Positions 14,330 through 33,670 of a stretch of DNA of 64,000 nt are shown one piece after another. The stretch lies in sequence record OR844650.1. The stretch is one strand, 5' to 3'. The notes beneath the pieces are model-generated. The model ran no database searches. It saw only the letters and a program-made list of their open reading frames with translations, and had not been told where the DNA came from. Each line of letters opens with the position of its first letter. Positions within the stretch are counted from its first letter, which is position 1. The position numbers and the translations under genes were made by a program.

Positions 14330-14415
14330 TCACCCCACCAGCAGATAGTTACTCACCGTTATTAACTATATATTTTAGATACACTCCTGCACCCAGTGGG
14401 CTAGTTTTTGTCTAT
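14330..14415 (-). ncRNA. Putative small RNA or leader, CCCANNGGGTGC family copy A
   Basis: TTGACT-17-TATTAT promoter at 14422-14450, no ORF downstream, GCCCACTGGGTGC at 14389-14401. Confidence 0.4.
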
Positions 14416-14472
14416 GCGTATATAATAGCAAAGGGACTGACCGGAGTCAATCCCTTTTTTTATTCTTTTTTG

Positions 14473-14673
14473 TTAGATGATTCTCCAATCTTCTACGATC
14501 ATGGTAAGATAACGGACCATCGATTCAAGTGATTCGAATTCCCGATAGTCTGCCGCTCCACCAGCGGTACAAGTACAGCCGATTAAACCATTTTGTAATT
14601 CCTTAATCTGTACATCGATAAGGTTGGCTTTAGCTTCTTTCAGTACTTCAACCAGGGCGATAGCGATAGACAT
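14473..14673 (-). CDS. Early hypothetical protein
   Basis: 66 aa behind cassette. Confidence 0.75.
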   Translation of the reverse strand: MSIAIALVEVLKEAKANLIDVQIKELQNGLIGCTCTAGGAADYREFESLESMVRYLTMIVEDWRII

Positions 14674-14762
14674 AATGTTTTACTCCAAACTATTGACGGG
14701 AGAACTATTCCCCCGCTCTATGTAAAACATTATACATTACTTGTTAGTACTGTCAAATAGTT

Positions 14763-15020
14763 TTATGAAATATCTTCGATGTAGTCGGCCCATTTCATTT
14801 TTTCAGTACTGTCAATGGCTACCGGATTATTTGGATCAAACCATTCACCATTACCGCAGTACATACCAACGGCTACGGTTTTATAGCCATCCTGGGCCGT
14901 ACTCCACGACATTGCACGATAGATATGGCCTTTAACTGGTTGCAGTACTGGTAACGTTTTATGGTCTTCTACGTAGGCCATAGCTTGAGGATTTACCCGA
15001 TATTGTGTGAATTGTTCCAT
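14763..15020 (-). CDS. Early hypothetical protein
   Basis: 85 aa, own promoter. Confidence 0.75.
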   Translation of the reverse strand: MEQFTQYRVNPQAMAYVEDHKTLPVLQPVKGHIYRAMSWSTAQDGYKTVAVGMYCGNGEWFDPNNPVAIDSTEKMKWADYIEDIS

Positions 15021-15096
15021 GATGTTTCCCCTTGTAGTTAGTAAAGTTATTACATCAGTACTATCAAGCTATGTCAATAGTACTGAAATAAAACTT

Positions 15097-15321
15097 TTAG
15101 ATTAGATTATTGATGCCGTTGATGGTAGACTCGCTTTCTTCTTTCTCCCATTGGCGGTAGTACTTCCATGCTTCATGATATGTGGCGATTAGTTCATCTT
15201 TTTGATCCTGAGTACATGCCAGTACTGAATCACGGTGAGCGGTGTTATAGATAGAATCGAATGATTTCTTCTCTTCTGCCAGGTTAGCTACTTCCCGCAT
15301 CAGTTCATCAAAGTTAGCCAT
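15097..15321 (-). CDS. Early hypothetical protein (acidic, helical)
   Basis: 74 aa behind cassette. Confidence 0.75.
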   Translation of the reverse strand: MANFDELMREVANLAEEKKSFDSIYNTAHRDSVLACTQDQKDELIATYHEAWKYYRQWEKEESESTINGINNLI

Positions 15322-15388
15322 TTTATTACTCCTTTTAGTGGGGGAGGATATCTCCCCCTATGCAAAACATTATACTTTGTTTTAGTTA

Positions 15389-15652
15389 TTATGCAAGTAC
15401 TTTTTTCATATAAAGATTATATTCTACACCGCCGTAACCTTCTACGATGATATGTTTTGCGTTATCACGTTTGCACATAGTGAAACCGTTGTTGATGTGT
15501 TCTGCATTTTCCAGGGCGACATCACCGATAGCGGCACATACGGCACTAATAACAGTATTCCGCAAAGTACTGGTATCATTAGCGGTCATAGTAGTTTGCA
15601 GTACTACGTTGTCGTATACGTGTGCATTGATAGTGATTTCGATAGTGTTCAT
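15389..15652 (-). CDS. Early hypothetical protein
   Basis: 87 aa, CAGGAG RBS behind cassette. Confidence 0.75.
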   Translation of the reverse strand: MNTIEITINAHVYDNVVLQTTMTANDTSTLRNTVISAVCAAIGDVALENAEHINNGFTMCKRDNAKHIIVEGYGGVEYNLYMKKVLA

Positions 15653-15738
15653 GGTGTATCTCCTGGACTGGCGGGAGAACTATTCCCCCGCTCTATGTAA
15701 AACATTATACGTTAATCTAACTACAATGCAAGTACTTT

Positions 15739-15930
15739 TTAAATTTTATTTCCGATATAGTCCGGTCTATTCTTTTCGGTCATACGCTTTGCTAATGTTT
15801 GCATATGGCTTATTGCGTTTAATGTGTCTTCCTCCAGGGATGAATCAACATAATCAGGATCATTCTTCACCTTGCAATGATTATGATAGCGTAGTACTGC
15901 CAGTACTTTTTTAACTTCTTCTACTGTCAT
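15739..15930 (-). CDS. Early hypothetical protein
   Basis: 63 aa, coupled to upstream gene. Confidence 0.7.
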   Translation of the reverse strand: MTVEEVKKVLAVLRYHNHCKVKNDPDYVDSSLEEDTLNAISHMQTLAKRMTEKNRPDYIGNKI

Positions 15931-16199
15931 AATAAGTACCCCACTTCGTTAGCTTTCAGGTTAGTATCAATCATCAGTGGATTTTTGTAGTTCACAAAAC
16001 GATTAGTTTTCTCGATAGCGAATCCCATATAATCCAGCTTACTAACAGTACATTCATTCTTAAAAACTTCTTTCGCTGCATCGATGGCTGATTGCATGGA
16101 TAACCGACCATCTAAATTAATGTTTCCAAATGATCCACCAGCAGAAGTAGGATTACCGTTCATATCTTTAATGATCATAGTAGCGGAGTAGCTGGACAT
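15927..16199 (-). CDS. Early hypothetical protein
   Basis: 90 aa behind cassette. Confidence 0.75.
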   Translation of the reverse strand: MSSYSATMIIKDMNGNPTSAGGSFGNINLDGRLSMQSAIDAAKEVFKNECTVSKLDYMGFAIEKTNRFVNYKNPLMIDTNLKANEVGYLL

Positions 16200-16286
16200 A
16201 ATTTTGTTTCCTTTTAGTATCGGGGAGAACTATTCTCCCCTTGATGTAAACTATTATACAGTACTGATATACTTTGTCAAATACTT

Positions 16287-16694
16287 TTATTCGCCCATAT
16301 AGATTAGATTATCATCGCCTACATAGGGATCGCAAACGTTGATTTCTTCGCAGTACTTAGTGAATACATCGCCATAGTGACCTAAACCACGATCCCAAAA
16401 ACCAGTTCCGTGACCTTCGCGGGTAAGGAACAGATCATGACCAGCTTGCTCATAACCGTAATCAATAAACATACCGCGAACTACTTCCAGATCATTACCG
16501 TGTTTCTCAATGAAGCGAGAACATGCAATCACCGCCGCTTGACGTGCTTCATCAGATAACTCATAATCTTCCAGGTAATCGCCGTTATCATTATGTACAG
16601 TACTGAATTGCATAGCTTCAATGTAAGCTACAACCATTGCAGCATGATTTTTATCGTTAGTGATGTTCCGAGCGAGATTAGTAGTAGTAGACAT
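16287..16694 (-). CDS. Conserved phage early protein with GHDLFLTREGHGTGFWDR motif
   Basis: Motif recalled from a widespread uncharacterised phage family; behind cassette. Confidence 0.8.
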   Translation of the reverse strand: MSTTTNLARNITNDKNHAAMVVAYIEAMQFSTVHNDNGDYLEDYELSDEARQAAVIACSRFIEKHGNDLEVVRGMFIDYGYEQAGHDLFLTREGHGTGFWDRGLGHYGDVFTKYCEEINVCDPYVGDDNLIYMGE

Positions 16695-16777
16695 GATTTT
16701 ATTCCTTATTGTATTGGGGAGAACTATTCTCCCCTTGATGTAAACTATTATACAGTACTGATATACTTTGTCAATAC

Positions 16778-16999
16778 TTAATTACGTTTAAAATGATATG
16801 TGCCTTTATCATCCTGTACGCCCCACACTGATTTACCATCAACACCAGTGAAACCGGATTGTAATTCAATATGGAAACCATTATTATCAACTACAAAAAC
16901 TTTTTTATTTTCATCCCGATAACATTGATATTCTGAATCAACATTAAAGGCCGCATCATTCAGAAGATTGGAAGCGTAAATGCAAGTCATTGTAGTCAT
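16778..16999 (-). CDS. Early hypothetical protein
   Basis: Start MTTMTC after AAGGAA RBS. Confidence 0.75.
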   Translation of the reverse strand: MTTMTCIYASNLLNDAAFNVDSEYQCYRDENKKVFVVDNNGFHIELQSGFTGVDGKSVWGVQDDKGTYHFKRN

Positions 17000-17094
17000 G
17001 ATTTTATTCCTTATTACCAGGGAGAACCATTTCCCCCTCTCTATGTAAAACATTATACTTGATTCTAAGTACAATGCAAGTACTTTTTATCAAA

Positions 17095-17167
17095 TAGTTT
17101 TCAGTACTGAATACTTATATAATAGATACACTTCCGCACCCTATGGGTCAGTGAGTTATCTCTCAAT
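17095..17167 (-). ncRNA. Putative small RNA or leader, CCCANNGGGTGC family copy B
   Basis: Promoter 17174-17202; ACCCATAGGGTGC at 17136-17148; TGAG-AGATAA-CTCA hairpin. Confidence 0.4.
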
Positions 17168-17220
17168 GAATATATAATAGCAAAGGGACTGACCGGAGTC
17201 AATCCCTTTTTTAATCTTTT

Positions 17221-17805
17221 TTATCGTGTTACCTTACTTGCTTCTACATCACGCTTTTTATAGTACTGATTCCAGATATTGCGGGTTAAACCGTAATCAA
17301 GTACTTTAATAAGGCCGTTGCGATCCTGGCCGATATTCTGTTTTCTGATATCTCTTATCGTTAGTGTTGACAGTGTATCATCAACGTGTTGTAGTGCATC
17401 AGCAAAGCGGTGCTGGCGTTCAATTGCATTACGTTTAATATTGTACTTTAATTCGTTGCACGCGTTAACGTGCTTTACACTGCCTTTACTTGCAGTACTC
17501 AACCGATCCATAACGATAAACATATTATCAGGATCGCATAAATGCATATGCACCTTTGCAAAGTACTGTTTCAATTGAGGGCGGTCATAGTCTAAAAAAT
17601 TCCATACCTTACATTCAGTTTCATTTTGTTCTACACCCGCATCACAATTGGCGACCTTAATCACTAACCGATCATTTAAAGCGAATACAATACGGGAAGA
17701 ACCCGCACCGATGATCTCCAGACCAGCTAACCGACAAGCTGAAAGGATCTCTTTGTTGGTTTCCATTTCTGACAGGGTACGGATGAATTTAGTATAATTA
17801 CGCAT
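17221..17805 (-). CDS. Protein kinase-like (Ser/Thr kinase fold)
   Basis: Gly loop IGAGSSRIV, VIKVA, helix-C Glu, catalytic DIRKQN, DYG; start MRNYTK. Confidence 0.8.
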   Translation of the reverse strand: MRNYTKFIRTLSEMETNKEILSACRLAGLEIIGAGSSRIVFALNDRLVIKVANCDAGVEQNETECKVWNFLDYDRPQLKQYFAKVHMHLCDPDNMFIVMDRLSTASKGSVKHVNACNELKYNIKRNAIERQHRFADALQHVDDTLSTLTIRDIRKQNIGQDRNGLIKVLDYGLTRNIWNQYYKKRDVEASKVTR

Positions 17806-17836
17806 TGCATGTTCTCCTTGAGTTAATGAAACTATC

Positions 17837-18079
17837 TTACAGTACTTTACTATCAATGGCAACCACTTTTTTCACACTAACCGCGTGAATCACTTCCTTA
17901 GTGTTTTTAGTACTGAATACTTTCGCTGTTCCTTGTTCTACTGCAATGCGATAACGACCGTTAACATCAACCATATTAATAAAGTCCGGTGTACTAAACC
18001 GAGTAGTACGGCATTTCAGTACTGTTAACAGTTCCACCAGCGATGTAGTTTCTTTGATACGTTTTTCTAAAGTAATCAT
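17837..18079 (-). CDS. Early hypothetical protein
   Basis: Start MITLEK; upstream region duplicated at 18360-18411. Confidence 0.7.
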   Translation of the reverse strand: MITLEKRIKETTSLVELLTVLKCRTTRFSTPDFINMVDVNGRYRIAVEQGTAKVFSTKNTKEVIHAVSVKKVVAIDSKVL

Positions 18080-18136
18080 TTTGTTTTCCCCGTGTTGGTA
18101 TGTACATATAGTACTAAAACATTTGAGTACTGTCAA

Positions 18137-18355
18137 TTAGATAATTGCATATTTCTTTAAAGATAATGCGTCTTGGGTTGGCTGATACTCAATGCCGTTA
18201 CCGTTATCTACTTTAACTAATAAACCTTTGTCAATTAGTTTTTTAATAGTCCTTTGGCCTTGTTGAAAATTGGTAAAATGTGAATCATTACGAAAGGTAT
18301 AACCGTGCTTAACTGCTTCATCAATAGTTTTCTTTTCGATTTTAGATAATTTCAT
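18137..18355 (-). CDS. Small basic protein, possible winged-helix
   Basis: Start MKLSK; TIKKLIDKGLLVK pattern. Confidence 0.65.
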   Translation of the reverse strand: MKLSKIEKKTIDEAVKHGYTFRNDSHFTNFQQGQRTIKKLIDKGLLVKVDNGNGIEYQPTQDALSLKKYAII

Positions 18356-18408
18356 TTTGTTTCTCCCGTGTTGGTATGTGTACATAATACTAAAACAATT
18401 GAGTACTG

Positions 18409-18663
18409 TCAACGTGATATTAGTTTTATTTTCTTATTATATTGTTGATGTTCATAAAGGTTTATCTTTCCTGTGTTCTCTATTACTATTCTGTTGTTAG
18501 TGTCTACATCGATTACACGCAGTTTTCCGTTGCTTAACTTCCTTGGTAATAGGTTACCATTAATAAACTCATTAGCAAGCTGTACGGCCTTTGTGATGAT
18601 TCTCTGTGGTGCTTTATAGTGTACCCGCAAGATATTATCTTTAGATAGTTGTACCTTAATCAT
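18409..18663 (-). CDS. Possible ParE/RelE-like small basic protein
   Basis: LRVIDV..NRIV...G....YEHQQYNK resembles prophage ParE-like proteins ending in SHExYN (recalled pattern). Confidence 0.45.
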   Translation of the reverse strand: MIKVQLSKDNILRVHYKAPQRIITKAVQLANEFINGNLLPRKLSNGKLRVIDVDTNNRIVIENTGKINLYEHQQYNKKIKLISR

Positions 18664-18725
18664 TTTAGTTTATCCTATAAAAAAGGCGGGAACTGATCCC
18701 GCCGTGTTGTTAGTACTGCAAGTTA

Positions 18726-19130
18726 TTAGATAACCTGGCGGCGTTTACTGTATACTGTTACACGATTACCCTTACGGTCGTGTCGGATCTCTTTCTGGTT
18801 GCGAACCAGTTCACTTGGACGCTTAAGGTTTGCCAGGTGATCCGCGTGAGTCCAAGCGGTATGGTTTGTCTGTACTTTGATATCAGAATCAGCGATAAAT
18901 TCATCTTGTGCGTTAAGTACTGCCGCCAGTAAATCCGCTCGTTTTAGTTCTGCTGCTGTTAGTACTGGCTCCGGTGAATTCACGATATCAGAGATTTCTT
19001 TGAACTGTACGGCCCAGCGTTGACCTTTCGGTGCATCTTTGCCCATGTCTTTAAATGCTGCTCCTTCCTCGCGTGCAACAATACGGGCAGCTTCACGGGT
19101 AGCGTAGAATTTAGTAATCATGGTATACAT
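18726..19130 (-). CDS. Early hypothetical protein, paralogue of 31151-31417
   Basis: ATRE.AR..AR..GA.FKDMG...G.RWA and DRKGNRVTVY shared. Confidence 0.8.
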   Translation of the reverse strand: MYTMITKFYATREAARIVAREEGAAFKDMGKDAPKGQRWAVQFKEISDIVNSPEPVLTAAELKRADLLAAVLNAQDEFIADSDIKVQTNHTAWTHADHLANLKRPSELVRNQKEIRHDRKGNRVTVYSKRRQVI

Positions 19131-19216
19131 CCTATTAGTTGAGTTAGTACTACAAGTTAGAGTCTATTATAAAGTACTATCTGGGCAATGTCAAATAGTA
19201 CTTTAAATGGATTCTA

Positions 19217-19540
19217 TTACATGTCTTTCTTACGTTTTACATCGTAGTAGCGAACTGTTATTTCTTTGTTAATCTCTTTTTCGATGCGGTGAATAACTTT
19301 TTCTTTCGGGTTGAAACCTATAACGGTTTCTTTAATGATCTCCAAGCCCGTGTATTCTCCTTGTGTACCGTAACCGTAAGTAAAGGTTTCATGTCCCAAG
19401 TCTTCCCAGCGGTCGCCAATTAACGCGGACACGTAGCAAGAGTGGTAAGTGTTACCGTTCCGATCAGTCCAGCGATTAACTTTAATGTCAAAGGAGGTTA
19501 CAATTTTCAGTTCTACTTTCTGGGTAAGGATCATAGCCAT
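19217..19540 (-). CDS. Early hypothetical protein, paralogue of 25604-25927
   Basis: RWTDxxGNTYHSC and FTYGY, ends VKRKKD(M/L). Confidence 0.8.
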   Translation of the reverse strand: MAMILTQKVELKIVTSFDIKVNRWTDRNGNTYHSCYVSALIGDRWEDLGHETFTYGYGTQGEYTGLEIIKETVIGFNPKEKVIHRIEKEINKEITVRYYDVKRKKDM

Positions 19541-19627
19541 TTTTATTTCTCTCTCTTTGTTAGGAGGGGAACCATTCCCCTCGCTTGATGTAAACTATTA
19601 TACAGTACTAAGATACTTTGTCAATAC

Positions 19628-19810
19628 TTATTTTTTGGAAAGTTTACGCATTAATTCTACGCTTTCTTGTGAACGTTTTGCTACCTGGCAAGCTGTATGG
19701 GCAGTAAACATTTTTGTATAGTCTGACGCTTTGCCACCAAACCGAGCGGCACGTTCACGGGCACTTGGAACTAATACTATTTCTTTCTTGCAGATAGTGC
19801 ACTTAGCCAT
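19628..19810 (-). CDS. Small Cys/His (Zn-ribbon-like) early protein
   Basis: CxxC ... HxxC. Confidence 0.75.
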   Translation of the reverse strand: MAKCTICKKEIVLVPSARERAARFGGKASDYTKMFTAHTACQVAKRSQESVELMRKLSKK

Positions 19811-19897
19811 TTTAATTTCTCTCTTTTAGTTAGGAGGGGAACCATTTCCCCGCCTTGATGTAAACTATTATACAGTACTAAGATACTTTGTCAATAC

Positions 19898-20173
19898 TTA
19901 AGTATTGTAAATGTCGTGAATAGTGATAAAGTTTTTACGCCCGTAAACCTGTAAATCGGTATTAATGTAGTGCTTATCAAGTACATCCTCGACGCTTAAC
20001 GCGGTGTCGTGAATATCTTCGTAGAATTGGGGATCTACAATCTTGCTTAAGTCATCCGGCGTTAACTTATCGTTAAGCCATTGAACCGCCTGGATATCTG
20101 CATCACGTTTCCATTGTTCCAGGTTAGTAGTCAGTACTTGCTCGATTTCGTTAGCTGTCAGTAGAATCCGCAT
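19898..20173 (-). CDS. Early hypothetical protein
   Basis: 91 aa, own promoter 20207-20234. Confidence 0.75.
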   Translation of the reverse strand: MRILLTANEIEQVLTTNLEQWKRDADIQAVQWLNDKLTPDDLSKIVDPQFYEDIHDTALSVEDVLDKHYINTDLQVYGRKNFITIHDIYNT

Positions 20174-20239
20174 TTTAATGTTTCCTTATCAGTGGTTGAT
20201 GTAAGTATTATACTCGTTTACTTTCTATTGTCAAACTAT

Positions 20240-20317
20240 TTTATCAGGGGAGTTTTTCGTATGTCTTACTCCTGGACTACTTAACGGGGTTACTTGTTTC
20301 GTTCCCCGTCCTGATGT
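20240..20317 (-). ncRNA. Putative two-hairpin small RNA or long leader, copy 1 (copy 2 at 30470-30550)
   Basis: Strong promoter with no RBS/ORF before the next promoter; ACGGGG/CCCCGT stem. Confidence 0.4.
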
Positions 20318-20364
20318 AAAACATTATACTTGATTCTAAGTACAATGCAAGTACTTTTTAAAAA

Positions 20365-20434
20365 TAGTTTTCAGTACTAGCCACCAGCAAACAATAGATA
20401 CATTTATGCACCCTGTGGGCTGATTTGTTTCTAT
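20365..20434 (-). ncRNA. Putative small RNA or leader, CCCANNGGGTGC family copy C
   Basis: Promoter 20441-20469; motif 20408-20420; Chi at 20381. Confidence 0.4.
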
Positions 20435-20487
20435 GCGTATATAATAGCAAAGGGACTGACTGGAGTCAATCCCTTTTTCAAATATTT

Positions 20488-20637
20488 TTAAACTTCTTTC
20501 GGGTTGCGATAGGTGATAGCGTTCGGGTACATTTGTTTAATGTTATTCCATGCCTGGTTAACATTATAACCACTTGAGCGAATCAGTTGGTTACTACCGA
20601 CACCTTGAAACACTACTTCGAATAAGAATTCTTTCAT
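20488..20637 (-). CDS. Small early protein (49 aa, MKEFLFEVVF...)
   Basis: Hand translation; ATGA-coupled to upstream gene. Confidence 0.65.
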   Translation of the reverse strand: MKEFLFEVVFQGVGSNQLIRSSGYNVNQAWNNIKQMYPNAITYRNPKEV

Positions 20638-20807
20638 GCTTTCACCTCGCTATCTGCTTTACCTTTACGCCAGGACATTACTAATTGTTCGCGTTGCCAT
20701 AAGTCGAGTGATACAAAAAGTTTTGCGGTATCACTTTTAGGATACTCGCCATTAGTACCTAACCGATAAAATAGATCTTTCAGTACTGATAATTCTACTT
20801 GGATCAT
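20634..20807 (-). CDS. Small early protein
   Basis: Start MIQVELS behind cassette. Confidence 0.7.
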   Translation of the reverse strand: MIQVELSVLKDLFYRLGTNGEYPKSDTAKLFVSLDLWQREQLVMSWRKGKADSEVKA

Positions 20808-20893
20808 TATACTTTCCTTTTTGTTAGGAGGGGAACTATTCCCCTCTCGATATAAAACATTATACACTTTATTCAGTACTGTGCAAGTACTTT

Positions 20894-21106
20894 TTAATCT
20901 TTCAGCCAATGATCTTGGATGAATTTTTCACCGAAGCCTTGCTGCATGGATTGTAACAGTCGTTCACGGTGAGCGGCGGCAAATTGCTCAGTACTATGCG
21001 TTACACCTGGTTGATAACGTGATTCACCATTGGGGGCGATGTATTGTACATCCCACGGTTTAGCGTTAGTATCAGACCATTTACGAACGATTAGTTGACC
21101 TTGCAT
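20894..21106 (-). CDS. Early hypothetical protein
   Basis: Start MQGQ after GAGGA. Confidence 0.7.
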   Translation of the reverse strand: MQGQLIVRKWSDTNAKPWDVQYIAPNGESRYQPGVTHSTEQFAAAHRERLLQSMQQGFGEKFIQDHWLKD

Positions 21107-21193
21107 TTTTCTTTCCTCAGTACTGGGGAGAATCATTTCTCCCCTTCATGTAACTTATTATACAGTACTATAATCTATTGTCCAGTACTTTTT

Positions 21194-21382
21194 TTACAGT
21201 TTATGAATCAATTCTTTATCTAAGCGATAGCGTACATTATTAATGGTAACAGCATTATTTTTAATGCTACGCTGTACTGGCCCACCAGCAATAACAAACG
21301 TTGCCTTATTACCCCGAACAATAATAGCACTTCCTGGATTGCTGTATTCATCTTGTACTAAAATACTTGATAAGTTTTCCAT
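21194..21382 (-). CDS. Early hypothetical protein
   Basis: 62 aa behind cassette. Confidence 0.7.
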   Translation of the reverse strand: MENLSSILVQDEYSNPGSAIIVRGNKATFVIAGGPVQRSIKNNAVTINNVRYRLDKELIHKL

Positions 21383-21463
21383 TTTTATTTCCTCTTAGTA
21401 GGGGAAGACGTTTCCCCTTGATGCAATACAGTATACACTATCTTTCAGTACTTTCAATACTTT

Positions 21464-21721
21464 TTATCTCATAGATCTATGCCAACAATTACGCGGATCT
21501 CTTTTAAAAGTACTATCATGATCCTCCTGGCAAGTTATGCAGTACTTACATCCCTTAACAGCCTGGCGGCGATTCTCAGGGATTTTATCGCCACAGTCGA
21601 GGCAATGTATCAGTGATTCTATTTGTGCGTTAATTTGCTTTCTAGCGTGGTTTACGGCGGCCTGAATCACTGCGTTAATCTCGTCTTGTTCGGCCCCGTC
21701 TTTCGCGAATCCGACAGCCAT
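21464..21721 (-). CDS. TraR/DksA C4 zinc-finger protein (YbiI-like)
   Basis: MAVGFAKDGAEQDEIN N-terminus, CLDCGDKIPENRRQAVKGCKYCITCQ. Confidence 0.9.
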   Translation of the reverse strand: MAVGFAKDGAEQDEINAVIQAAVNHARKQINAQIESLIHCLDCGDKIPENRRQAVKGCKYCITCQEDHDSTFKRDPRNCWHRSMR

Positions 21722-21918
21722 TATTTTAACCTTTTTCTATCATTAATTAATGCTTTCAGTACTATACTAATAACTTGCAATGATTCATCAATAACTATAA
21801 AATTATTTTCTTTCATTAGATGATAGTTACCATTGATATTATATTCTAACGAGTACTGTTTACGTTTAATTTTTGATAATGTTTCTATTTGTTTTTGTAC
21901 TGATTTCATGCTAATCAT
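21721..21918 (-). CDS. Early hypothetical protein
   Basis: 65 aa. Confidence 0.65.
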   Translation of the reverse strand: MISMKSVQKQIETLSKIKRKQYSLEYNINGNYHLMKENNFIVIDESLQVISIVLKALINDRKRLK

Positions 21919-22017: not shown

Positions 22018-22023
22018 ATAATC

Positions 22024-26160: not shown

Positions 26161-26246
26161 ATTAGTTTCCTCATTATCAGGGAGAACCATTTCTCCCCTT
26201 GATGTAATGTATTATACTTTATCTGATTTACTTTGCAAGTACTTTT

Positions 26247-26474
26247 TTAATTTAATTCATCAAGGCAAAGGATACGCTCAACGCCCAAATCAGTTAAACT
26301 AATCGACGGCACTTGATAGGTTTCAATGTATGCTACACTTGCCCACTGACCGAACTCATTAACGGCCCAGGTATTCATTGCATTTTGCAATTCCGCACCT
26401 TCCTTGTTGGTAATGACTGCAACTACTTGTTCGTTGCCAGTAGTACCAGATACGCGAGTAATGATAATAGCCAT
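26247..26474 (-). CDS. Early hypothetical protein
   Basis: Start MAIII after AAGGAA. Confidence 0.7.
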   Translation of the reverse strand: MAIIITRVSGTTGNEQVVAVITNKEGAELQNAMNTWAVNEFGQWASVAYIETYQVPSISLTDLGVERILCLDELN

Positions 26475-26711
26475 TGTTTTGATTCCTTTGATTTGGAAGG
26501 AGAACCGTTTCCCCCTCTCGATGTAAAACATTATACGCTAATCTCTTAATCGTGCAAGTACTTTTTATTACTTTTTGCAAAATACTTTAAACGCTCTCAA
26601 TCGCATTCTAACGACCTTAACGCCACCAGCTAGGGCGATGCATCAGATAATCAGTTTAATGCGTTAGAATCGATTCTAGGCGGTGCTGGTGGCCTGGTAA
26701 ACGATAAACAC

Positions 26712-26737
26712 AAAAAAGCCCACTTATGCAGTGGGCT
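26712..26737 (-). terminator. Intrinsic terminator
   Basis: AGCCCAC-TGCATAA-GTGGGCT then T run on minus strand. Confidence 0.75.
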
Positions 26738-26758
26738 AGTGATTCAGTACTTTAATTG

Positions 26759-27241
26759 TTATGCTTCAACTTTGCGATGAGATTCGATCCATTCCTCGCG
26801 AGTCATACCGCTGGCGTTAATCGCGTCCAGTACTACCGCAATACAGTTACCACGCACCGGAATCAGATATTCTTCCCCGTTGTCCAGTACTACCGCTACG
26901 CGTTCCTGAATCCATTTTTTGGCTTTTACTTCTGGCTTGTCTTCCCCATACTTAACCGCCAGGGCTTTTTGTGCCATCTCTGTAACTACTTCCAGATCCA
27001 ATCCAACTACTGCCGCCTGAATACTTTCGATTGTTGCTTGTAGTTCTGCTTCACGGGCCGCCTTTGCCGCTTCAATTTCTGCCGCTTTATTTGCTTGTAG
27101 TTCTTTCGCAGTACTGTACGCGATGTTAAAATTATTGCGTACCGCTTTCATGGTATCGTTATCCAGTTCAGCCAGGATCTCAGCCGCGACGTTAGTTTCA
27201 TTTGCTACCAGTGCTTTGATGAATGATTTTACATTAGCCAT
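26759..27241 (-). CDS. Coiled-coil early protein
   Basis: Start MANVK; Ala/Glu/Lys-rich helix. Confidence 0.8.
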   Translation of the reverse strand: MANVKSFIKALVANETNVAAEILAELDNDTMKAVRNNFNIAYSTAKELQANKAAEIEAAKAAREAELQATIESIQAAVVGLDLEVVTEMAQKALAVKYGEDKPEVKAKKWIQERVAVVLDNGEEYLIPVRGNCIAVVLDAINASGMTREEWIESHRKVEA

Positions 27242-27446
27242 TTTATAAATCCTCAATTAAAGTTTAGTTTACGTTTATTAGTGTATCAAAGTTTTCTCGA
27301 CGTGTCCAGTTTTTCGTTCGACTTACTGGCGGTCTACTTAGTGCTCCCCGTCTTGATGTAATACATTCTACGCTTTTCTGCGGTAATGTCAACTACTTTT
27401 TTAAAACTATTTTCAAAGTATCTCAGTACTACGATACTACAAAAAC

Positions 27447-27469
27447 AAAAAAAGCCCACCAGGTGGGCT
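27447..27469 (-). terminator. Intrinsic terminator
   Basis: AGCCCAC-CTG-GTGGGCT then long T run on minus strand. Confidence 0.75.
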
Positions 27470-27475
27470 ATGTAC

Positions 27476-27706
27476 TTAATCAGTGAGTAAAATATTAAAC
27501 ACTTTACCATTTAACGTTATTGGTGCACTGCTACCAGGCTCAAGATCCGTTAGTATACCTGCAATCGCTTTATCATTGGCGACCTTTCCAGTGTCCAACA
27601 GTACGACAGTACTGATAAGATTAACGCTCGTTTCAATATCATAATGCACGGCGTTAAGTAGTTGTGTAGTACTGCTTTCGTTAAGTAAAACAATTCGCTT
27701 AGTCAT
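27476..27706 (-). CDS. Early hypothetical protein
   Basis: 76 aa. Confidence 0.7.
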   Translation of the reverse strand: MTKRIVLLNESSTTQLLNAVHYDIETSVNLISTVVLLDTGKVANDKAIAGILTDLEPGSSAPITLNGKVFNILLTD

Positions 27707-27727
27707 GATGTTACCCCGTAGTATCTA

Positions 27728-28027
27728 TCAACGGCAATTAATAACGCCAGTATGAGTTACTTTCTCAGTATCCATAACAGTGACCGAACCGCGTTTAGTA
27801 CTTGCATCGTAATAAATTGTCGTGCTACCTTTTTCGTCTTCTTCATGGAACGGCCCGTTTTTAAATGCTTCCGGCTGGATCTCTAAATCCTTTAATACAA
27901 TCTCGCCAGTTCTTTCATCGGTCATTGCAACAGTGCACTGAATGAATTTTTCACTACTTACATCTAATGACGCATTAACAGCGAAAGAGGAAACAGATAA
28001 AGCCAGGGCGATGATTGCAATTTTCAT
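27728..28027 (-). CDS. Exported early protein with signal peptide
   Basis: MKIAIIALALSVSSFAVNA signal-peptide pattern. Confidence 0.75.
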   Translation of the reverse strand: MKIAIIALALSVSSFAVNASLDVSSEKFIQCTVAMTDERTGEIVLKDLEIQPEAFKNGPFHEEDEKGSTTIYYDASTKRGSVTVMDTEKVTHTGVINCR

Positions 28028-28111
28028 TTGATTATCCTTAGTTACCAGGGGGAACCGCTCCCCCTTGCGATGTAAAATATTATACAGTACTAAAAACTAT
28101 TATCAAGTACT

Positions 28112-28348
28112 TTATGATTTTTTATAAAACATTTCAGCAGTGATATTTTTACCCGTTGGCTGTACTTTATCCAGAATTTTTTGATGCCCTGGCCGTCCAA
28201 ATGAATATGATCCGTAAACCGTAAACCAGTAGTTACCCTCAGTGTTTACATGTACAGCACAATAGGGAACGCCCCGCGATTCATCACTAGTAAAGTGTGC
28301 TACCGTTCCCGTTACATTCGAAGACGTTGATTTGATTTGTTCGACCAT
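28112..28348 (-). CDS. Early hypothetical protein
   Basis: 78 aa behind cassette. Confidence 0.7.
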   Translation of the reverse strand: MVEQIKSTSSNVTGTVAHFTSDESRGVPYCAVHVNTEGNYWFTVYGSYSFGRPGHQKILDKVQPTGKNITAEMFYKKS

Positions 28349-28491
28349 TTTCTTATTCCTTAGTTACCAGGGGAACCGCTCCCCCTATGCAAAACATTAT
28401 ACGCGTTTAAAAACTAATTGCAAGTATTTTAATAAAAAGTATTTGAAAAATAGTTGTTGACAAGTGCATCCAGTACTGGCATAATTACTAC

Positions 28492-28600
28492 ATCAAGACG
28501 AAACAGTCACTAACCCACCGGGTGCCGAGATCCGTCTATTAAATGATTCAGTACTGAAAAAGTAACGGGGAGTTATTATCTCCCCGCGTTGTTATTTTGT
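28492..28600 (+). ncRNA. Putative plus-strand small RNA, CCCANNGGGTGC family copy G
   Basis: TTGACA-17-CATAAT at 28457-28485, motif 28513-28525, CGGGGAG/CTCCCCG hairpin 28566-28586; no ORF. Confidence 0.5.
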
Positions 28601-28813
28601 AAGGTATAAACAGAAGTCACCTTTATTTGCTACGCCGCCAGTGTAACGCGATGAATAGTTAGAAACGTCCTGGACTTCTGCTATTACCAGGGTATCATCA
28701 TTCAATTCGTCGCAGAAGCAAACGGCTGGATCTTGTACGCCGATTTTGTCGGCATGTTCCCGCATAGATTTAACCAGTGCTTCCAGTTGGGAAAGAGTAG
28801 TGATATTAGCCAT
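28592..28813 (-). CDS. Early hypothetical protein
   Basis: Start MANITT after GAGGA. Confidence 0.7.
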   Translation of the reverse strand: MANITTLSQLEALVKSMREHADKIGVQDPAVCFCDELNDDTLVIAEVQDVSNYSSRYTGGVANKGDFCLYLTK

Positions 28814-28900
28814 TTTATTTTCCTCATTACCAGGGAGAACCATTTCCCCCCTCTATGTAAACCATTATACAGTACTGAAAACTAATTGCAAGTACTTTTT

Positions 28901-29104
28901 TTAATTTAATTGCTTTAAAACATAATCAAAGACACCACGCACATCATTGATCATTGCCGTGCGGTTAGCAGGTAACGCATCAGGATCGCCACTATCCCAG
29001 GCATTGATAAAACTCCCCAAATCATGAAAGATTTTATTCTGTAAGCCGATTAACTGCAATTCTTTTTCTTCAAGCTCTTTGATACGTTCAATTAAATCAC
29101 TCAT
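28901..29104 (-). CDS. Early hypothetical protein
   Basis: Start MSDLIE after AAGGA. Confidence 0.7.
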   Translation of the reverse strand: MSDLIERIKELEEKELQLIGLQNKIFHDLGSFINAWDSGDPDALPANRTAMINDVRGVFDYVLKQLN

Positions 29105-29121
29105 TATATAATCCTTAGTAC

Positions 29122-29403
29122 TTAACTGTAAGATCCGCAACGGTCGCAGTAGTGCCCCTCGTCATCGTCAACGAATTGACCAACGAAATTATCTACTTTC
29201 GCTTTCAGGTTATTATAATCGTTTTCTACTTCCTTTAAACGCTTCTGGTAGTATTCCAGTGCTTTAAGATATGCCGCGTCAGCAGTTTTCTCCTGCATAG
29301 CTAAATTCATGCCACGCGTTTCATCGTACAGCCAAAAACCATCGGTGCACTGGCTAATAGATAATGACTTGCTTAGTACTGTATAGTTAATTACTTTACT
29401 CAT
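29122..29403 (-). CDS. Early hypothetical protein
   Basis: Start MSKVIN after GAGGG. Confidence 0.75.
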   Translation of the reverse strand: MSKVINYTVLSKSLSISQCTDGFWLYDETRGMNLAMQEKTADAAYLKALEYYQKRLKEVENDYNNLKAKVDNFVGQFVDDDEGHYCDRCGSYS

Positions 29404-29461
29404 TAGATAAACCCTCAATAAAGGCGGGAACCATTCCCCGCCATTGTTACAGTACTGAATA

Positions 29462-29701
29462 TTACATTCCAACCATTGCAGCACGGATCGCCGTAGTGCT
29501 ATACTTGAATCCGTCCGGCGTTGTAGTAGTACCGTTGGCTTTTAATCTGCGGTACATACATTCCGCAGCAATATCTTTAGTTCTACTTTGTGCGATGCAA
29601 CTTTGAGCAAGCCGATACAATGACTCACCGTTATTAATCCATAAGGAAACATTCCAATGAGTTTTGTTTTTGTGCCCGTTGTAAGTTTTAGTACTAGCCA
29701 T
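29462..29701 (-). CDS. Early protein, paralogue of 31501-31740
   Basis: GHKNKTHWNVSLWINN and identical TPDGFKYSTTAIRAAMVGM end. Confidence 0.8.
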   Translation of the reverse strand: MASTKTYNGHKNKTHWNVSLWINNGESLYRLAQSCIAQSRTKDIAAECMYRRLKANGTTTTPDGFKYSTTAIRAAMVGM

Positions 29702-29793
29702 TTTTTTTAATCCTCGTTTGAGCGGGGAACCACTCCCCGCCTCGATATAAAGTATTATACGCCTTTAAACTTAGTTTGCAAGTACTTTTTAAA

Positions 29794-30405
29794 TTAATAT
29801 TCGATTGATTCTACTACACCATCAATGACATTGAATTGATATTCGTTACCCTCAATCAGTGCCGTAATGTTTTCAGTAGTGAATTGATCCTCATATGCAT
29901 TCTCTAAATCACGGTACAACTTGCGGGACAATTCACGAATAGTGTCAGTGAGTAGTTCCTCAAGCTCATTAACTAACGTTTCTTGTTTTGCGGTTAAATC
30001 AGTGTAAGCCGATTCAATGTACCCGCTTACAGTGTTCTCATGCGAGTAGTGGGAGTGAGAACGCTTTACACTCATCGCCAAATCATCTTCATTCAGCAAG
30101 TGACGGATTGAGCGATACTTAGTTAATGCTCTTACCTTGCGTAAAAACTTCACTGCGTCAACGTGGTCAGTACTGATTGATGCACCGTCACCCTGGGACC
30201 AAAAACCACTGAATTGTATTTCAGCGTCATTAATGCCATATTCCGGTAGTACTGTTTCTTTATAGTATTCAATTTCACTTTCAGAAAAATAATCATCGTT
30301 TAAGTTTTTTTCACGTTCCCGAACCAGTTCGATAGCTGACGTTTTTTGTTCTGCGTTCAATTCAGAAAAATCCATAACGAAAGTAGTAGTAGTGATAGTT
30401 TTCAT
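29794..30405 (-). CDS. Acidic conserved phage early protein (FSGFWSQGDGAS motif)
   Basis: 203 aa, Glu/Asp-rich; motif recalled from a widespread phage family. Confidence 0.8.
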   Translation of the reverse strand: MKTITTTTFVMDFSELNAEQKTSAIELVREREKNLNDDYFSESEIEYYKETVLPEYGINDAEIQFSGFWSQGDGASISTDHVDAVKFLRKVRALTKYRSIRHLLNEDDLAMSVKRSHSHYSHENTVSGYIESAYTDLTAKQETLVNELEELLTDTIRELSRKLYRDLENAYEDQFTTENITALIEGNEYQFNVIDGVVESIEY

Positions 30406-30469
30406 TTTGTAACTCTCATTCAGTAGTTGATGTAAGTATTATACGCTTTTAAAAACATTTGTCAAACTA

Positions 30470-30550
30470 TTTTATCAGGGGAGTTTTTCGTGTGCCTTAC
30501 TCCTGGGCTACTTAACGGGGAGTTACTTATTTCGTTCCCCGTCCTGATGT
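30470..30550 (-). ncRNA. Putative two-hairpin small RNA or long leader, copy 2
   Basis: Near-identical to 20240-20317; ACGGGGA/TCCCCGT stem. Confidence 0.4.
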
Positions 30551-30664
30551 AAAACATTATACGCCTTTAAACATAGTTTGCAAGTACTTTTTAAAAATAG
30601 TTTTCAGTACTGAATATTAAAAAAAAGTATTGACAGCATTATCAAGTACTGGCATAATATACCC

Positions 30665-30767
30665 CATGACAACAGCTAACCCACCGGGTGCACAATTGTA
30701 ACTGTAATAAACTACTTTTTCTATAGATACACTCCCGCACCCTATGGGCTACGGCTTATCTGCCAAT
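30665..30767. ncRNA. Convergent pair of motif-bearing transcripts (copy H plus, copy E minus)
   Basis: Plus promoter 30630-30658 with motif 30679-30691; minus promoter 30774-30802 with motif 30737-30749. Confidence 0.45.
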
Positions 30768-30832
30768 GAATACATTATGCCAGTACTGACAAAATAAGTC
30801 AATACCGGCAATTGTAAAGATTTGTAAACTGC

Positions 30833-31063
30833 TTATACTGCAATCGCGTCCAGGCTATAATAATAATAAGTGCCGTATTGGTGTACTTTATTACCTTTTA
30901 TTTCAGTACTGAATGAATCCGAACGGTTTGCATATGATGTTAATTTAAAGTACTTTGATTTGCTGATACGTTGCCATACACCGCAGATCCGCTGTAAGTA
31001 AGTAGTTTTATTCGTGGTAGTATCTTTTACGGTTTTAACTTCAGTCATATACATATTAGTCAT
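30833..31063 (-). CDS. Early hypothetical protein
   Basis: 76 aa behind cassette. Confidence 0.7.
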   Translation of the reverse strand: MTNMYMTEVKTVKDTTTNKTTYLQRICGVWQRISKSKYFKLTSYANRSDSFSTEIKGNKVHQYGTYYYYSLDAIAV

Positions 31064-31150
31064 TTTTATTACTCCAGGTTATAGGCGGGATGTGTTCCCG
31101 CTCTAGATGTAAAACATTATACGCCATTAAACATAGTTTGCAAGTACTTT

Positions 31151-31417
31151 TTATTCAAGTACTGCAATCTTTTTAGTACGGTACACGGTCACGCGGTTGC
31201 CCTTTCGGTCGAGCTTTATTTCTACCACTCGACGCGATACACTATCGGGACTTTTTAAGGCCGCTAACCAGTACTGTAATGATCTGGCTGTACTACGCTT
31301 TACAATGGCCCAACGTTCACCACTTGCCGATCCCGCACCCATATCTTTAAACGTTGCCCCGTCCTGGCGAGCGGCGATCCGAGCTTGTTCACGCGTCGCA
31401 AAATACTTAATATTCAT
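31151..31417 (-). CDS. Early protein, paralogue of 18726-19130
   Basis: Start MNIKY. Confidence 0.75.
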   Translation of the reverse strand: MNIKYFATREQARIAARQDGATFKDMGAGSASGERWAIVKRSTARSLQYWLAALKSPDSVSRRVVEIKLDRKGNRVTVYRTKKIAVLE

Positions 31418-31500
31418 GCTGTTGCCCTTATCGTTGGTGTATGAATAAAACACTATTATAAAGTACTATCACCGTGCAATAGTACTTTAAATAAATTCTA

Positions 31501-31740
31501 TTACATTCCAACCATCGCCGCACGGATCGCAGTAGTGCTATATTTGAATCCGTCCGGTGTTTTATCTTGTCCAGTCTGTTCTAAAAATAGCATCATATGA
31601 CGGGCCGCATCATTGCGATTAGTGCTATCGTTAATAAAGTCCTGGGCCAACCGGTACAATGATTCATCGTTATTAATCCAAAGGCTTACATTCCAATGAG
31701 TTTTGTTTTTGTGACCTAAGAACATTTTTGATTTTGCCAT
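31501..31740 (-). CDS. Early protein, paralogue of 29462-29701
   Basis: Start MAKSK after GAGGA. Confidence 0.8.
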   Translation of the reverse strand: MAKSKMFLGHKNKTHWNVSLWINNDESLYRLAQDFINDSTNRNDAARHMMLFLEQTGQDKTPDGFKYSTTAIRAAMVGM

Positions 31741-31823
31741 TTTTTTTAATCCTCTTATATAGTGGGGAACTATTCCCCACCTGATGTAAAACATTATACG
31801 CTTTTAAACTTAGTTTGCAAGTA

Positions 31824-32057
31824 CTATTTTTTCAGTACTGGTAAACCTTTGATCTCACCTGGCTGTACTTCCTCAAAGGCGACCGCCATCATACGGCTAT
31901 CATCTTCCTTACATTCTTCCATCGCATCACAAAAATGATTAATAACGTCCGGTGCAACGTCAACCACATCAAACAAGCCAACCTCAGTGCAACGGCTTAA
32001 AGCGTTTAATAGGTCAGTCAGTGCAACGGATTGAGAAACAGTTAAAATAGTACTCAT
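31824..32057 (-). CDS. Early hypothetical protein
   Basis: 77 aa behind cassette. Confidence 0.7.
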   Translation of the reverse strand: MSTILTVSQSVALTDLLNALSRCTEVGLFDVVDVAPDVINHFCDAMEECKEDDSRMMAVAFEEVQPGEIKGLPVLKK

Positions 32058-32151
32058 AAAATTAATCTCTTAATTTTAGTGGGGAACTATTCCCCACCTG
32101 ATGTAAAACATTATACGCCATTAAACATAGTTTGCAAGTACTTTATTAAAC

Positions 32152-32514
32152 TTATTTGTAAATTTTGCCACTGTCAGCCCATACCAGGAAACGAGGCATA
32201 TTATCCCATGCATCTTGTTTTAAGTTTAAGCCGTGCAATTCCTCAGTTGTTGCCATCCCTGGTACTGGCTTACTACACACCGCGAAATTTTCGCCCATGT
32301 ACTGATAAACCATCGTCAAATCATTTGAGATCATTACATGGATCATTGAATCAAGCATCAAAGTAGCGGCGTATTGTTCACGCTTAAGCGGCAACATTGC
32401 AATAAGTTCCCGATAAGCTGCAATGTGAATTTTTACAGTTTCAGCCGGAAGACCTTTCATCTCTTCGCGGAAGTTTACCAGGTTAAGCATGATTTTAGTG
32501 ATTTGAGTCGCCAT
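32152..32514 (-). CDS. Early hypothetical protein
   Basis: Start MATQI behind cassette. Confidence 0.75.
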   Translation of the reverse strand: MATQITKIMLNLVNFREEMKGLPAETVKIHIAAYRELIAMLPLKREQYAATLMLDSMIHVMISNDLTMVYQYMGENFAVCSKPVPGMATTEELHGLNLKQDAWDNMPRFLVWADSGKIYK

Positions 32515-32907
32515 CGTTTTAATCTCTCTTAATGTGTAGCGGGAAGTGTTCCCGCTCTCGATGTAAAACATTATACGCCTTTAAACATAGTTTGCAAGTA
32601 CTTTCTACATGTACTTTTAAAATAGTTTTCTTTCTATATAGGGGAACTATCATTCAGTACTGCAACCATCCAGGGGAACTATCTTTCTATATAGGAGTAC
32701 TATTATTCAGTACTGAATCAACCAAATCACTACTACACCCCGTAAAACGGCCTCAGACGCATTCTAACGCATTAATACACCTAAGCTATACATTTGCACC
32801 ATTCCAATCATTCCAGGGCTTTACGGGCCGTTTAAACGCGTTAAATTATTTTCAATTATTTTGTTTTTAGGTATTGACTTGATCCTGAAAAAGCGTATAA
32901 TTACTAC

Positions 32908-33200
32908 ATAGACGCGAGAAAGCGGAAACCCCAGAGGGTGCGGAATTACGCCCAAAATTCAAGATATAAAAAAAGGATACACTCCCGCACCCTAGCAGGT
33001 AAACGCACTTTCTCAGTACTGAAATATAGTACCATAGTACGGCCCAGGATAGCAAGCAAATTAATTAAAACTTTTTTGCTTCCAGGGTATTGCTTTATTT
33101 TTTCAGTACTGTATAATAGTTCCATCAAGTCGAGAAAGACTCAAGCCCACCGGGTGCATAGTTACGCCCAAAATTCAGTACTGAAAAAATTTTTAAAAAA
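32908..33200 (+). ncRNA. Two tandem plus-strand motif-bearing transcripts (copies I, J) with opposing degenerate copy F
   Basis: Promoters 32874-32901 and 33090-33117; motifs 32929-32941 and 33145-33157, each followed by TTACGCCCAAAATTC. Confidence 0.4.
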
Positions 33201-33340
33201 TATCCGTCCAGGCCGTTGACATTGCCCCCAGTTTATAAGATAATGATTCCAGATTCAGAAAAATCTAACTTCAGATACTGCGGGGAAACTATCCCCACGC
33301 GGTAGGGGAACTATTGGAAAAACAAAATAAAATTTTGATT

Positions 33341-33452
33341 TAGCCGTCTATACTTCCAGACGTGTAACCATCTAGCCGTTTAGCCGTCCAAACGTCTAGC
33401 CATCCAGCCATCCAGAAATCTAGCCGTTTAGCCGTCTAGATGGATAGCCATC
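33341..33452 (+). repeat. 8-bp periodic array, consensus TAGCCRTC
   Basis: Units in register at 33341, 33373, 33381, 33397, 33405, 33421, 33429, 33445. Confidence 0.8.
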
Positions 33453-33650
33453 TTTACTTCCAGACTTCTGGAGGGCTAGACATATCTACGTCCAAAATCC
33501 ATCCAGGGTAACTACACCCAAAATCCGTCAGTACTATACCATAGATCTATCTTTTGAAAGGGAGTATTCAGTACTGCCATCATAGCCCTCACTATGTTAC
33601 CCTAGGAGGATGAAGACCATCATGTAGTACTGAATACTGTTAGAGGGAAT

Positions 33651-33670
33651 CCACCAGCACAAGCTGGTGG
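33651..33670. other. Inverted pair of Chi octamers
   Basis: CCACCAGC-ACAA-GCTGGTGG. Confidence 0.8.

Follow-up and report, generated by a model that had tools for sequence, protein, structure and literature searches.

Chi octamers clustered in the putative direct terminal repeat of an Asteriusvirus jumbo coliphage

The octamer GCTGGTGG, which enteric bacteria use as Chi, occurs repeatedly between about 14 and 34 kb of a 64,000-nucleotide stretch of sequence record OR844650.1 (hereafter the window), and this locus raises the question of what the block is and why the word is so frequent in it. A preliminary description of the window had located a polarised cluster of Chi octamers in an "early island" and had taken it as self-mimicry that protects the genome ends before any protein directed against RecBCD is made. 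With the help of exact word searches, composition models and comparison with related phages we examined the position, specificity, orientation and conservation of these octamers and weighed the explanations that they allow.

The 14-34 kb stretch was 100% identical to Escherichia phage EC22.5-2 (OR845138.1, 351,992 bp) and 93-97% identical to other Asteriusvirus jumbo coliphages, including fEgEco12 and vB_Ec-M-J, and this homology identifies the "early island" as the long direct terminal repeat (DTR) of such a phage (Table 1). Position 1 of fEgEco12 aligned with window position 34247 and its position 20993 with window position 12973, and the records of E9.1 and ELP-22 start at the position matching 34247. 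The two terminal copies in fEgEco12 are 100% identical over 20,993 bp, and the termini of this phage were confirmed by PhageTerm and restriction digests (PMC13070987). The homologous stretch in the vB_Ec-M-J record is annotated as a 21,525-bp DTR, and the close relative Sharanji has a 20,668-bp DTR according to PhageTerm (PMC11895373). The limits of the DTR in the present isolate rest on homology to these relatives and not on its own reads; near-identity and a repeat of about 21 kb at the homologous place both assign the phage to the Asteriusvirus and Rak2-like group. The window is reverse-complemented relative to the virion, whose left terminus is at 34247 and whose right-hand DTR copy has its right end at 12973.

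The DTR has a guanine plus cytosine (G+C) content of 38.8% compared with 33.8% in the rest of the genome, and its approximately 50 small genes all lie on the minus strand of the window. It contains an array of sigma-70-type promoters (Table 1), with 106 promoter-like sites against 64.8 ± 9.0 in shuffled sequences and with every 12/12 match on the minus strand. The promoter array marks the DTR as a block read by the host RNA polymerase, which is therefore presumably early; in the relative PA5oct the DTR genes were assigned to the early class by RNA sequencing (bioRxiv 10.1101/679506). A kinase-like gene within the repeat, with tblastn matches in 54 jumbo-phage records, was used as the anchor for locating the DTRs of distant relatives.

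An exact search of the window returned 15 copies of GCTGGTGG compared with 0.76 (standard deviation 0.94) in dinucleotide-preserving shuffles, none of which reached 15. Nine minus-strand and two plus-strand sites lay inside the 14-34 kb block (Table 1), and the search reproduced exactly all 11 coordinates and strands of the preliminary description, as well as the absence of Chi from 1-13 kb and 34-39 kb. For the genome-wide count that this description had called for, the window was joined to the other 288 kb of the genome. Of the 28 Chi in the whole genome (352 kb), the DTR accounted for 11 (0.52 per kb) and the other 330.7 kb for 17 (0.051 per kb), and the word is thus not equally frequent elsewhere. 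The claimed confinement to the island therefore stands as a tenfold difference in density but not in the strict sense, with 17 Chi in the rest of the genome, where 8.6 are expected under an order-3 Markov model for the approximately 331 kb. The four further sites of the window, absent from the earlier list, are background occurrences outside the array. Three of them stand within 520 bp (54204-54724, plus strand) in GGTGGT-rich sequence, in which GCTGGTGG comes after runs such as GGTGGTGGT, and are probably a by-product of coding that is unrelated to the DTR array.

Under Markov models of order 1 to 4 trained on the DTR itself, 0.18-0.38 Chi are expected in the 21.3-kb region, in agreement with the earlier expectation of about 0.2, and 11 were found. 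The DTR contains 11,664 different octamers. Among the 15 with the most significant over-representation, Chi had the highest ratio of observed to expected counts (28.7); by p-value it ranked seventh, behind the CAGTACTG palindrome family and promoter words containing TATAAT. A maximal-order Markov model gave 10.2 against the 11 observed, a comparison that is uninformative since the constituent 7-mers occur almost solely within Chi. The enrichment was specific to the exact octamer. The count of 11 exceeded that of every one of 167 anagrams of the same composition (mean 0.34), Chi was top among its anagrams in all four lineages tested, and variants with one mismatch were not enriched (three on the top strand and none on the bottom strand, with 6.8 and 2.7 expected). 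Seven of the 11 sites were intergenic in a region with approximately 30% intergenic DNA (p = 0.02), which bears out the earlier remark that many are intergenic, and the four coding sites used two reading frames (0 and 2). The sequences flanking the sites had a mean identity of 29% (best pair 43%) and no common context, and Chi as a piece of a longer repeat was ruled out by these unrelated flanks. The enrichment is poorly accounted for by composition, codon use, a repeat family or a degenerate binding motif.

RecBCD recognises 5'-GCTGGTGG-3' if it reaches the octamer from the 3' side (restated in bioRxiv 10.1101/2021.07.08.451572). The nine minus-strand sites face the right virion end, at distances from 1.36 to 20.68 kb, and the two plus-strand sites face the left end (Table 1). 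The preliminary description had treated the block edges as DNA ends, and the DTR edges are physical termini as mapped from fEgEco12; with respect to these mapped termini the minus-strand sites are oriented for RecBCD entering at 12973 and the plus-strand site at 33663 for entry at 34247, as it had proposed. The 29.8 kb of unique DNA past the inner DTR edge, within the window, contained no correctly oriented Chi, and the array thus exactly covers the redundant DNA. Summed over four lineages, sites were split 35:7 between the strands, compared with expected counts of 1.83 and 0.31, which corresponds to an approximately 20-fold enrichment on each strand, and 30 of these 42 sites lay in the DTR half nearer the end that they face (p = 0.004). 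As regards the claimed polarity, the bias of 9:2 is present but no stronger than the G-rich sense strand predicts; since the strand-specific expectation by itself puts 85% of sites on the top strand, we rejected polarity as a separate argument for design.

The octamers are under purifying selection. In fEgEco12, vB_Ec-M-J, TH47 and 121Q, 39 of the 40 alignable site-by-relative octamers were intact, and changes affected two of 320 octamer positions compared with 440 of 7,972 positions (5.5%) in the ±100-bp flanks (p = 2.5e-6, a value that ignores the shared ancestry of the four relatives), so that change is about nine times rarer in the octamers than in the sequence around them. Chi-dense blocks also recurred at non-homologous positions across six diverged lineages (Table 1), and in the DTR of fENko-Kae01 Chi was the most over-represented octamer. 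The lineages differ in where the sites lie yet keep the density, a pattern that speaks for selection on the word's presence in the DTR. As hosts, the records name E. coli, Klebsiella and, for XbC2, Xanthomonas. No GCTGGTGG was found in the 39-kb DTR of PA5oct, whose host lies outside the Enterobacterales; the Pseudomonas-type Chi GCTGGCGC was considered as a host-matched counterpart in this DTR and rejected, with one copy only.

Two observations on the relatives stand by themselves. Phage XbC2 (OP292654.1, 1-17581) was isolated on Xanthomonas vesicatoria and carries nine enteric-type Chi in its DTR, and 22.9 kb of unique sequence from the opposite end of its record contained one more. Its intergenomic similarity to Enterobacterales phages exceeds 50%. 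This leaves two readings: the RecBCD of Xanthomonas recognises this word too, or the array was left over from, or is adapted to, an enterobacterial host. In fENko-Kae01, four Chi (3711, 9192, 16840, and 18721) are located inside early-promoter spacers, between the -35 and -10 boxes, which may reflect either a cost-free non-coding placement of the octamer or a hint of a link to transcription.

We consider it probable that the clustered host Chi sites in the DTR form a selected array, which stops RecBCD within redundant DNA and loads RecA for recombination between the repeats. The DTR is the only DNA present at both ends of the virion chromosome, and it exists in two copies; that RecBCD reads its Chi sites, and that recombination is the outcome, are inferences. 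RecBCD would load on an injected double-strand end and degrade inward. An enzyme entering at the right end would meet nine oriented Chi in series and one entering at the left end two (at 0.58 and 7.6 kb), and with Chi in series nearly every enzyme would switch to producing a RecA-coated 3' tail while still within redundant sequence, with degradation held within sequence that has a second copy. The RecA-coated tail would be homologous to the other DTR copy, so that the end would be both saved and used, and the two resected ends would be mutually complementary over the repeat. The DTR copies could then recombine or anneal to a circle, a sigma form or a concatemer feeding replication, and both end protection and a shorter zone of CRISPR spacer capture would be consequences of the same RecBCD switch. 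The fEgEco12 paper treats circularisation via the DTR without mention of RecBCD or Chi (PMC13070987). It is conceivable, though we regard it as doubtful, that the Rak2-like phages of enterobacteria, virulent and with T4-type recombination genes of their own, depend on host RecBCD, Chi and RecA for their first replication step, in which case a 3' tail from the right-hand DTR would invade the left-hand copy and give a circular or sigma-shaped template for concatemers.

Several points weigh against an array selected for recombination. The 35:7 strand split does not depart from the strand-composition prediction (p = 0.73), only one or two sites face the left end, and in Muenster no left-facing Chi lies within 6.4 kb of that end. 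The shared ancestry of the four relatives bears on the conservation statistic, and XbC2 was isolated on Xanthomonas, a host without a known Chi sequence. Rak2-like phages encode homologues of UvsX, gp46/47, UvsW and gp32 (PMC5259590; Sharanji, PMC11895373), and with recombination genes of their own they would have no obvious need for host recombination as judged from their gene content. The phages also depart, in possessing a recombination module, from the rule reported for the LLS class of Chi-rich phages, which have neither such a module nor a RecBCD inhibitor. Full-text searches returned no published test of whether the growth of these phages depends on RecBCD or RecA.

The array might instead be a pure shield, as the preliminary description had it, in which Chi attenuates RecBCD on the first-injected DNA and keeps spacer capture low until a phage-encoded RecBCD inhibitor or a protein protecting the ends comes into play, without selection for recombination between the repeats. 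The geometry would be identical, the phage's own recombination genes may make RecBCD-mediated exchange dispensable, and the DTR is promoter-dense, read by the host RNA polymerase and early in PA5oct. The first-entering repeat of T5 carries pre-early genes transcribed towards the entering end, and by this analogy the right end, which nine Chi face, could enter first. In T7, by contrast, the left end enters the cell first, and with such an order the dense array would face the last-arriving end. No known anti-RecBCD family was found among 30 DTR proteins (20 screened against PHROGs and 10 against Pfam, with about 20 further small open reading frames (ORFs) outside the screen). Moreover, Chi turns RecBCD into a RecA loader and does not simply stop it, so that one would expect it to lead to recombination with the other DTR copy, and the precedents of P1 and LLS favour active use of RecBCD. 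We therefore think it rather unlikely that shielding is the whole explanation; as a consequence of the same RecBCD switch it is compatible with an array that serves recombination.

Two further explanations dispense with RecBCD. The octamer could be a cis signal on the DNA or on the sense strand of early RNA, acting in transcription, anti-termination, packaging or replication and coinciding with Chi. This would fit the location of 35 of the 42 sites on the transcribed sense strand, the four promoter-spacer sites of fENko-Kae01, the two Chi pairs that form hairpins, and the abundance of other conserved short motifs in the DTR, such as CAGTACTG. We nevertheless regard it as improbable, given that the sites stand in heterogeneous contexts (coding frames, upstream of promoters, spacers, leaders, and hairpins), that near-matches are not enriched, which would be unusual for a protein-binding motif, that the approximately 20-fold enrichment extends to the bottom strand, which an RNA motif does not explain, and that the word coincides exactly with the host Chi in six lineages that grow on enteric-type hosts, whereas the Pseudomonas relative lacks it. 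Alternatively, the word could be unselected, a by-product of composition, codon use, a repeated element or recently acquired host DNA. The higher G+C content of the DTR speaks for this explanation, as does the G-rich sense strand that accounts for the strand bias, and of the six top-strand sites that lie in coding sequence of XbC2, five are read in the common CTG-GTG frame. It is close to refuted by the 11 sites observed against Markov expectations of 0.18-0.38 and an anagram mean of 0.34, the intergenic position of seven of them and their unrelated flanks, a G+C content (39%) far from the approximately 51% of E. coli, the roughly ninefold better conservation of the octamers than of their flanks, and the recurrence of the density at non-homologous positions in diverged lineages.

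Terminal clustering of Chi is already known from P1-like phages and from lambdoids without a recombination module, and the array resembles both. Phage P1, with 50 Chi in 95 kb, needs RecA and RecBCD to circularise, and in P1, as in P7 and D6, Chi is among the most over-represented octamers and is concentrated in or near the terminal redundancy (bioRxiv 10.1101/2021.07.08.451572). Chi is as frequent in non-coding as in coding DNA of P1, and recombination of its terminal repeats by RecA and RecBCD has been proposed. P1 differs in being temperate and packaged headful from pac, with ends spread over 20-40 kb, and its Chi are genome-wide and nearly random in orientation, with a demonstrated dependence on recA and recBC; the jumbo phage is virulent with exact ends, and its Chi array is confined to a fixed 21-kb DTR and lies mostly on one strand. 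In phage LLS, 23 Chi are clustered near the right end, of which 20 are in the active orientation for RecBCD entering there, and RecBCD improves growth (Zheng et al., Genome Res 2025, PMC12315714); as for P1, a recombinational use of RecBCD and Chi has been proposed for LLS. Terminal clustering, strong polarity and a word matching the Chi of enteric hosts are features in common with LLS, and the Pseudomonas phage MD8 likewise carries the host-matched word GCTGGCGC (PMC12315714). Phages of the LLS type are cos-type temperate lambdoids that lack recombination genes and a RecBCD inhibitor, whereas the jumbo phages have their own UvsX, gp46/47, UvsW and gp32 homologues, long DTRs in place of cohesive ends, and Chi in an early-gene repeat. 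As in the P1-like and LLS-like classes, the Chi density is far above expectation (29-fold over the Markov models) and concentrated at the packaged ends, and selection on the word is indicated by non-coding occurrence, conservation and recurrence in six lineages. The sites are also oriented for RecBCD from the homology-mapped termini, a match that concerns the position of the ends rather than access to them in vivo.

With T5 the jumbo phages have in common a long exact DTR with host-transcribed early genes at both ends of a virulent genome; the T5 repeat differs in having two Chi in its 10.2-kb DTR, with none in the next 40 kb. To our knowledge no role of Chi has been described for T5, and we know of no T5-like two-step transfer in Rak2-like phages. 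The two T5 sites (AY543070.1, positions 8127 and 8689, top strand) face the right end, the same direction as in the jumbo phages, in numbers too small to interpret. An oriented Chi near a double-strand end would also shorten the RecBCD-degraded stretch that feeds Cas1-Cas2. Chi is said to limit CRISPR spacer acquisition and RecBCD degradation of "self" DNA, reportedly in work by Levy et al. from 2015; this is a property of any Chi rather than a described phage strategy, and Subramaniam and Smith dispute the self/non-self reading of Chi. Full-text searches found no paper linking Chi to Asteriusvirus, to Rak2-like phages or to the long DTRs of virulent phages. New here are the occurrence in virulent jumbo phages, the exact and long early-gene DTR, the recombination system of the phage alongside the array, and the presence in several genera.

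Individual sites differ in their surroundings (Table 1). The Chi at 14335 is located approximately 27 nucleotides upstream of a -35 box. The convergent pair at 26623 and 26685 forms a weak fold (z = -2.2) and is kept in fEgEco12, vB_Ec-M-J and TH47, with one arm lost in 121Q; a transfer RNA or other known RNA at this inverted pair was rejected, with a weak fold and no match in ARAGORN or Rfam. The double-Chi hairpin at 33651-33670 has an 8-bp stem and a 4-nucleotide loop (-9.8 kcal/mol, z = -4.0). Its plus-strand arm at 33663 is the only outward-facing Chi close to the left end, and its minus-strand arm at 33651 is the last Chi that an enzyme from the right end would reach. Counterpart palindromes occur at the same place in fEgEco12, vB_Ec-M-J, TH47 and 121Q, and in fENko-Kae01 at 484-503 with another loop sequence. 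A scan of IMG/VR for CCACCAGC-N4-GCTGGTGG returned 46 loci, by estimate roughly the number expected by chance, with 121Q as the sole jumbo phage, and so led nowhere.

Table 1. Coordinates of the Chi sites and associated features in the window, and Chi counts in the terminal repeats or homologous blocks of related phages. nt, nucleotides; aa, amino acids.
Feature or phage	Position or extent	Strand or Chi top:bottom	Remarks
DTR	12973..34247	-	21,275 bp; single copy in collapsed assembly; by homology to the fEgEco12 DTR
Sigma-70-type promoter array	14260..33982	-	Ten perfect TTGACA-16/17-TATAAT; many more TTGCAA-16-TATAAT
Kinase-like early gene, 213 aa	17221..17862	-	Weak Pfam Pkinase match, E = 0.003, under curated cut-off
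Chi, intergenic	14335..14342	-	1.36 kb from right terminus; first met by RecBCD entering there
Chi in 66-aa ORF, frame 0	14558..14565	-	1.59 kb from right terminus
Chi in 90-aa ORF, frame 0	16135..16142	-	3.16 kb from right terminus
Chi in 99-aa ORF, frame 2	18034..18041	-	5.06 kb from right terminus; just upstream of kinase-like gene
Chi, intergenic	20381..20388	-	7.41 kb from right terminus
Chi in 62-aa ORF, frame 2	21282..21289	-	8.31 kb from right terminus
Chi, intergenic	21995..22002	-	9.02 kb from right terminus
Convergent Chi pair	26623..26692	26623 -, 26685 +	9-bp arms flank 54 nt of intergenic DNA; 26623 at 13.65 kb from right end, 26685 at 7.56 kb from left end
Double-Chi hairpin CCACCAGC-ttgt-GCTGGTGG (virion orientation, window minus)	33651..33670	33651 -, 33663 +	578-597 nt from left terminus; 33651 at 20.68 kb from right end, 33663 at 0.58 kb from left end
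Further Chi outside DTR	40877, 54204, 54459, 54717	+	Exact search
fENko-Kae01 (Klebsiella)	DTR 19,736 bp, PhageTerm	12:2	2 in next 30 kb
Muenster (Klebsiella)	DTR 20,030 bp	7:1	0 in next 17.8 kb
OU509535 (Klebsiella)	Block limits not defined	8:1	Flanks 0
XbC2 (isolated on Xanthomonas)	DTR 17,581 bp, PhageTerm (PMC11273794)	7:2	0 in next 8.7 kb
EJP2 (E. coli)	High-GC block of ~21.8 kb	7:1	0 in 21 kb
TH47 (E. coli)	Homologous block	8:2	Flanks 0
CMSTMSU (E. coli)	Homologous block	10:1	Flanks 0
PA5oct (Pseudomonas)	DTR 39,080 bp	0:0	0 in next 10.9 kb

The DTR and its surroundings contain other repeated elements. The palindrome CAGTACTG is the most over-represented octamer of the DTR, with 39 copies compared with approximately 4.5 expected (for example at 33692-33725, 33608, and 33876); it is mostly intergenic and upstream of early promoters, and it also ranks first or close to first in the DTRs of Muenster (61 copies), XbC2 (28 copies) and fENko-Kae01 (13 copies). 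A hairpin with a 12-bp stem, AAAGGGATTGACTCCGGTCAGTCCCTTT followed by GCTATTATAT, is present in four copies on the minus strand (14457-14430, 17209-17182, 20476-20449, and 23950-23923). Its stem holds a -35-like TTGACT, after which comes a -10-like TATTAT, and this combination marks the hairpin as a structured, repeated promoter element.

The approximately 1.7 kb that separate the first DTR gene from the left terminus (32572-34247) contain no convincing ORF, and a near-consensus promoter, TTGACT-16-TATAAT (33882-33855), reads into this stretch. It could be a non-coding leader or RNA; Rfam returned no match for it. Long non-coding RNAs are known from the DTR of PA5oct. The DTR proteins screened belonged mostly to families of unknown function, apart from sub-threshold kinase and Tox-PL-2 matches. 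The latter, between a 165-aa protein (26759-27256, minus strand) and the Pfam papain-fold toxin family (E = 0.0068, 17.1 bits, cut-off 25), is probably not meaningful. Runs of overlapping minus-strand ORFs of 60-90 aa flank the DTR (7148-12905 and 34550-39341) and look like arrays of small paralogous genes; the plus-strand GC skew of the 34.5-39.3 kb run is positive, opposite to that of the DTR and of the 7-13 kb run.

Until now, terminal Chi arrays were known from temperate phages, in which they were read as a sign of borrowing RecBCD. The same signature in the exact 17.6-21.5-kb DTRs of virulent jumbo phages, common to Asteriusvirus, Alcyoneusvirus, the fENko-Kae01 lineage, Mimasvirus and EJP2, extends this idea to a new lifestyle and genome architecture, and it breaks the reported link of high Chi density with the absence of a phage recombination module. 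It offers a handle on how linear genomes of 350 kb with DTRs survive RecBCD, on how circularisation and replication start, and on the repeat as an expendable buffer. The octamer statistics of DTRs could furthermore read out Chi words that are as yet unknown, or host-specific nuclease signals, from sequence alone. If the dependence on host recombination were true, a lytic jumbo phage would need RecBCD as a host factor, and since phages of this group are therapy candidates for E. coli and Klebsiella, such a dependence on rec functions would be a practical determinant of host range and resistance.

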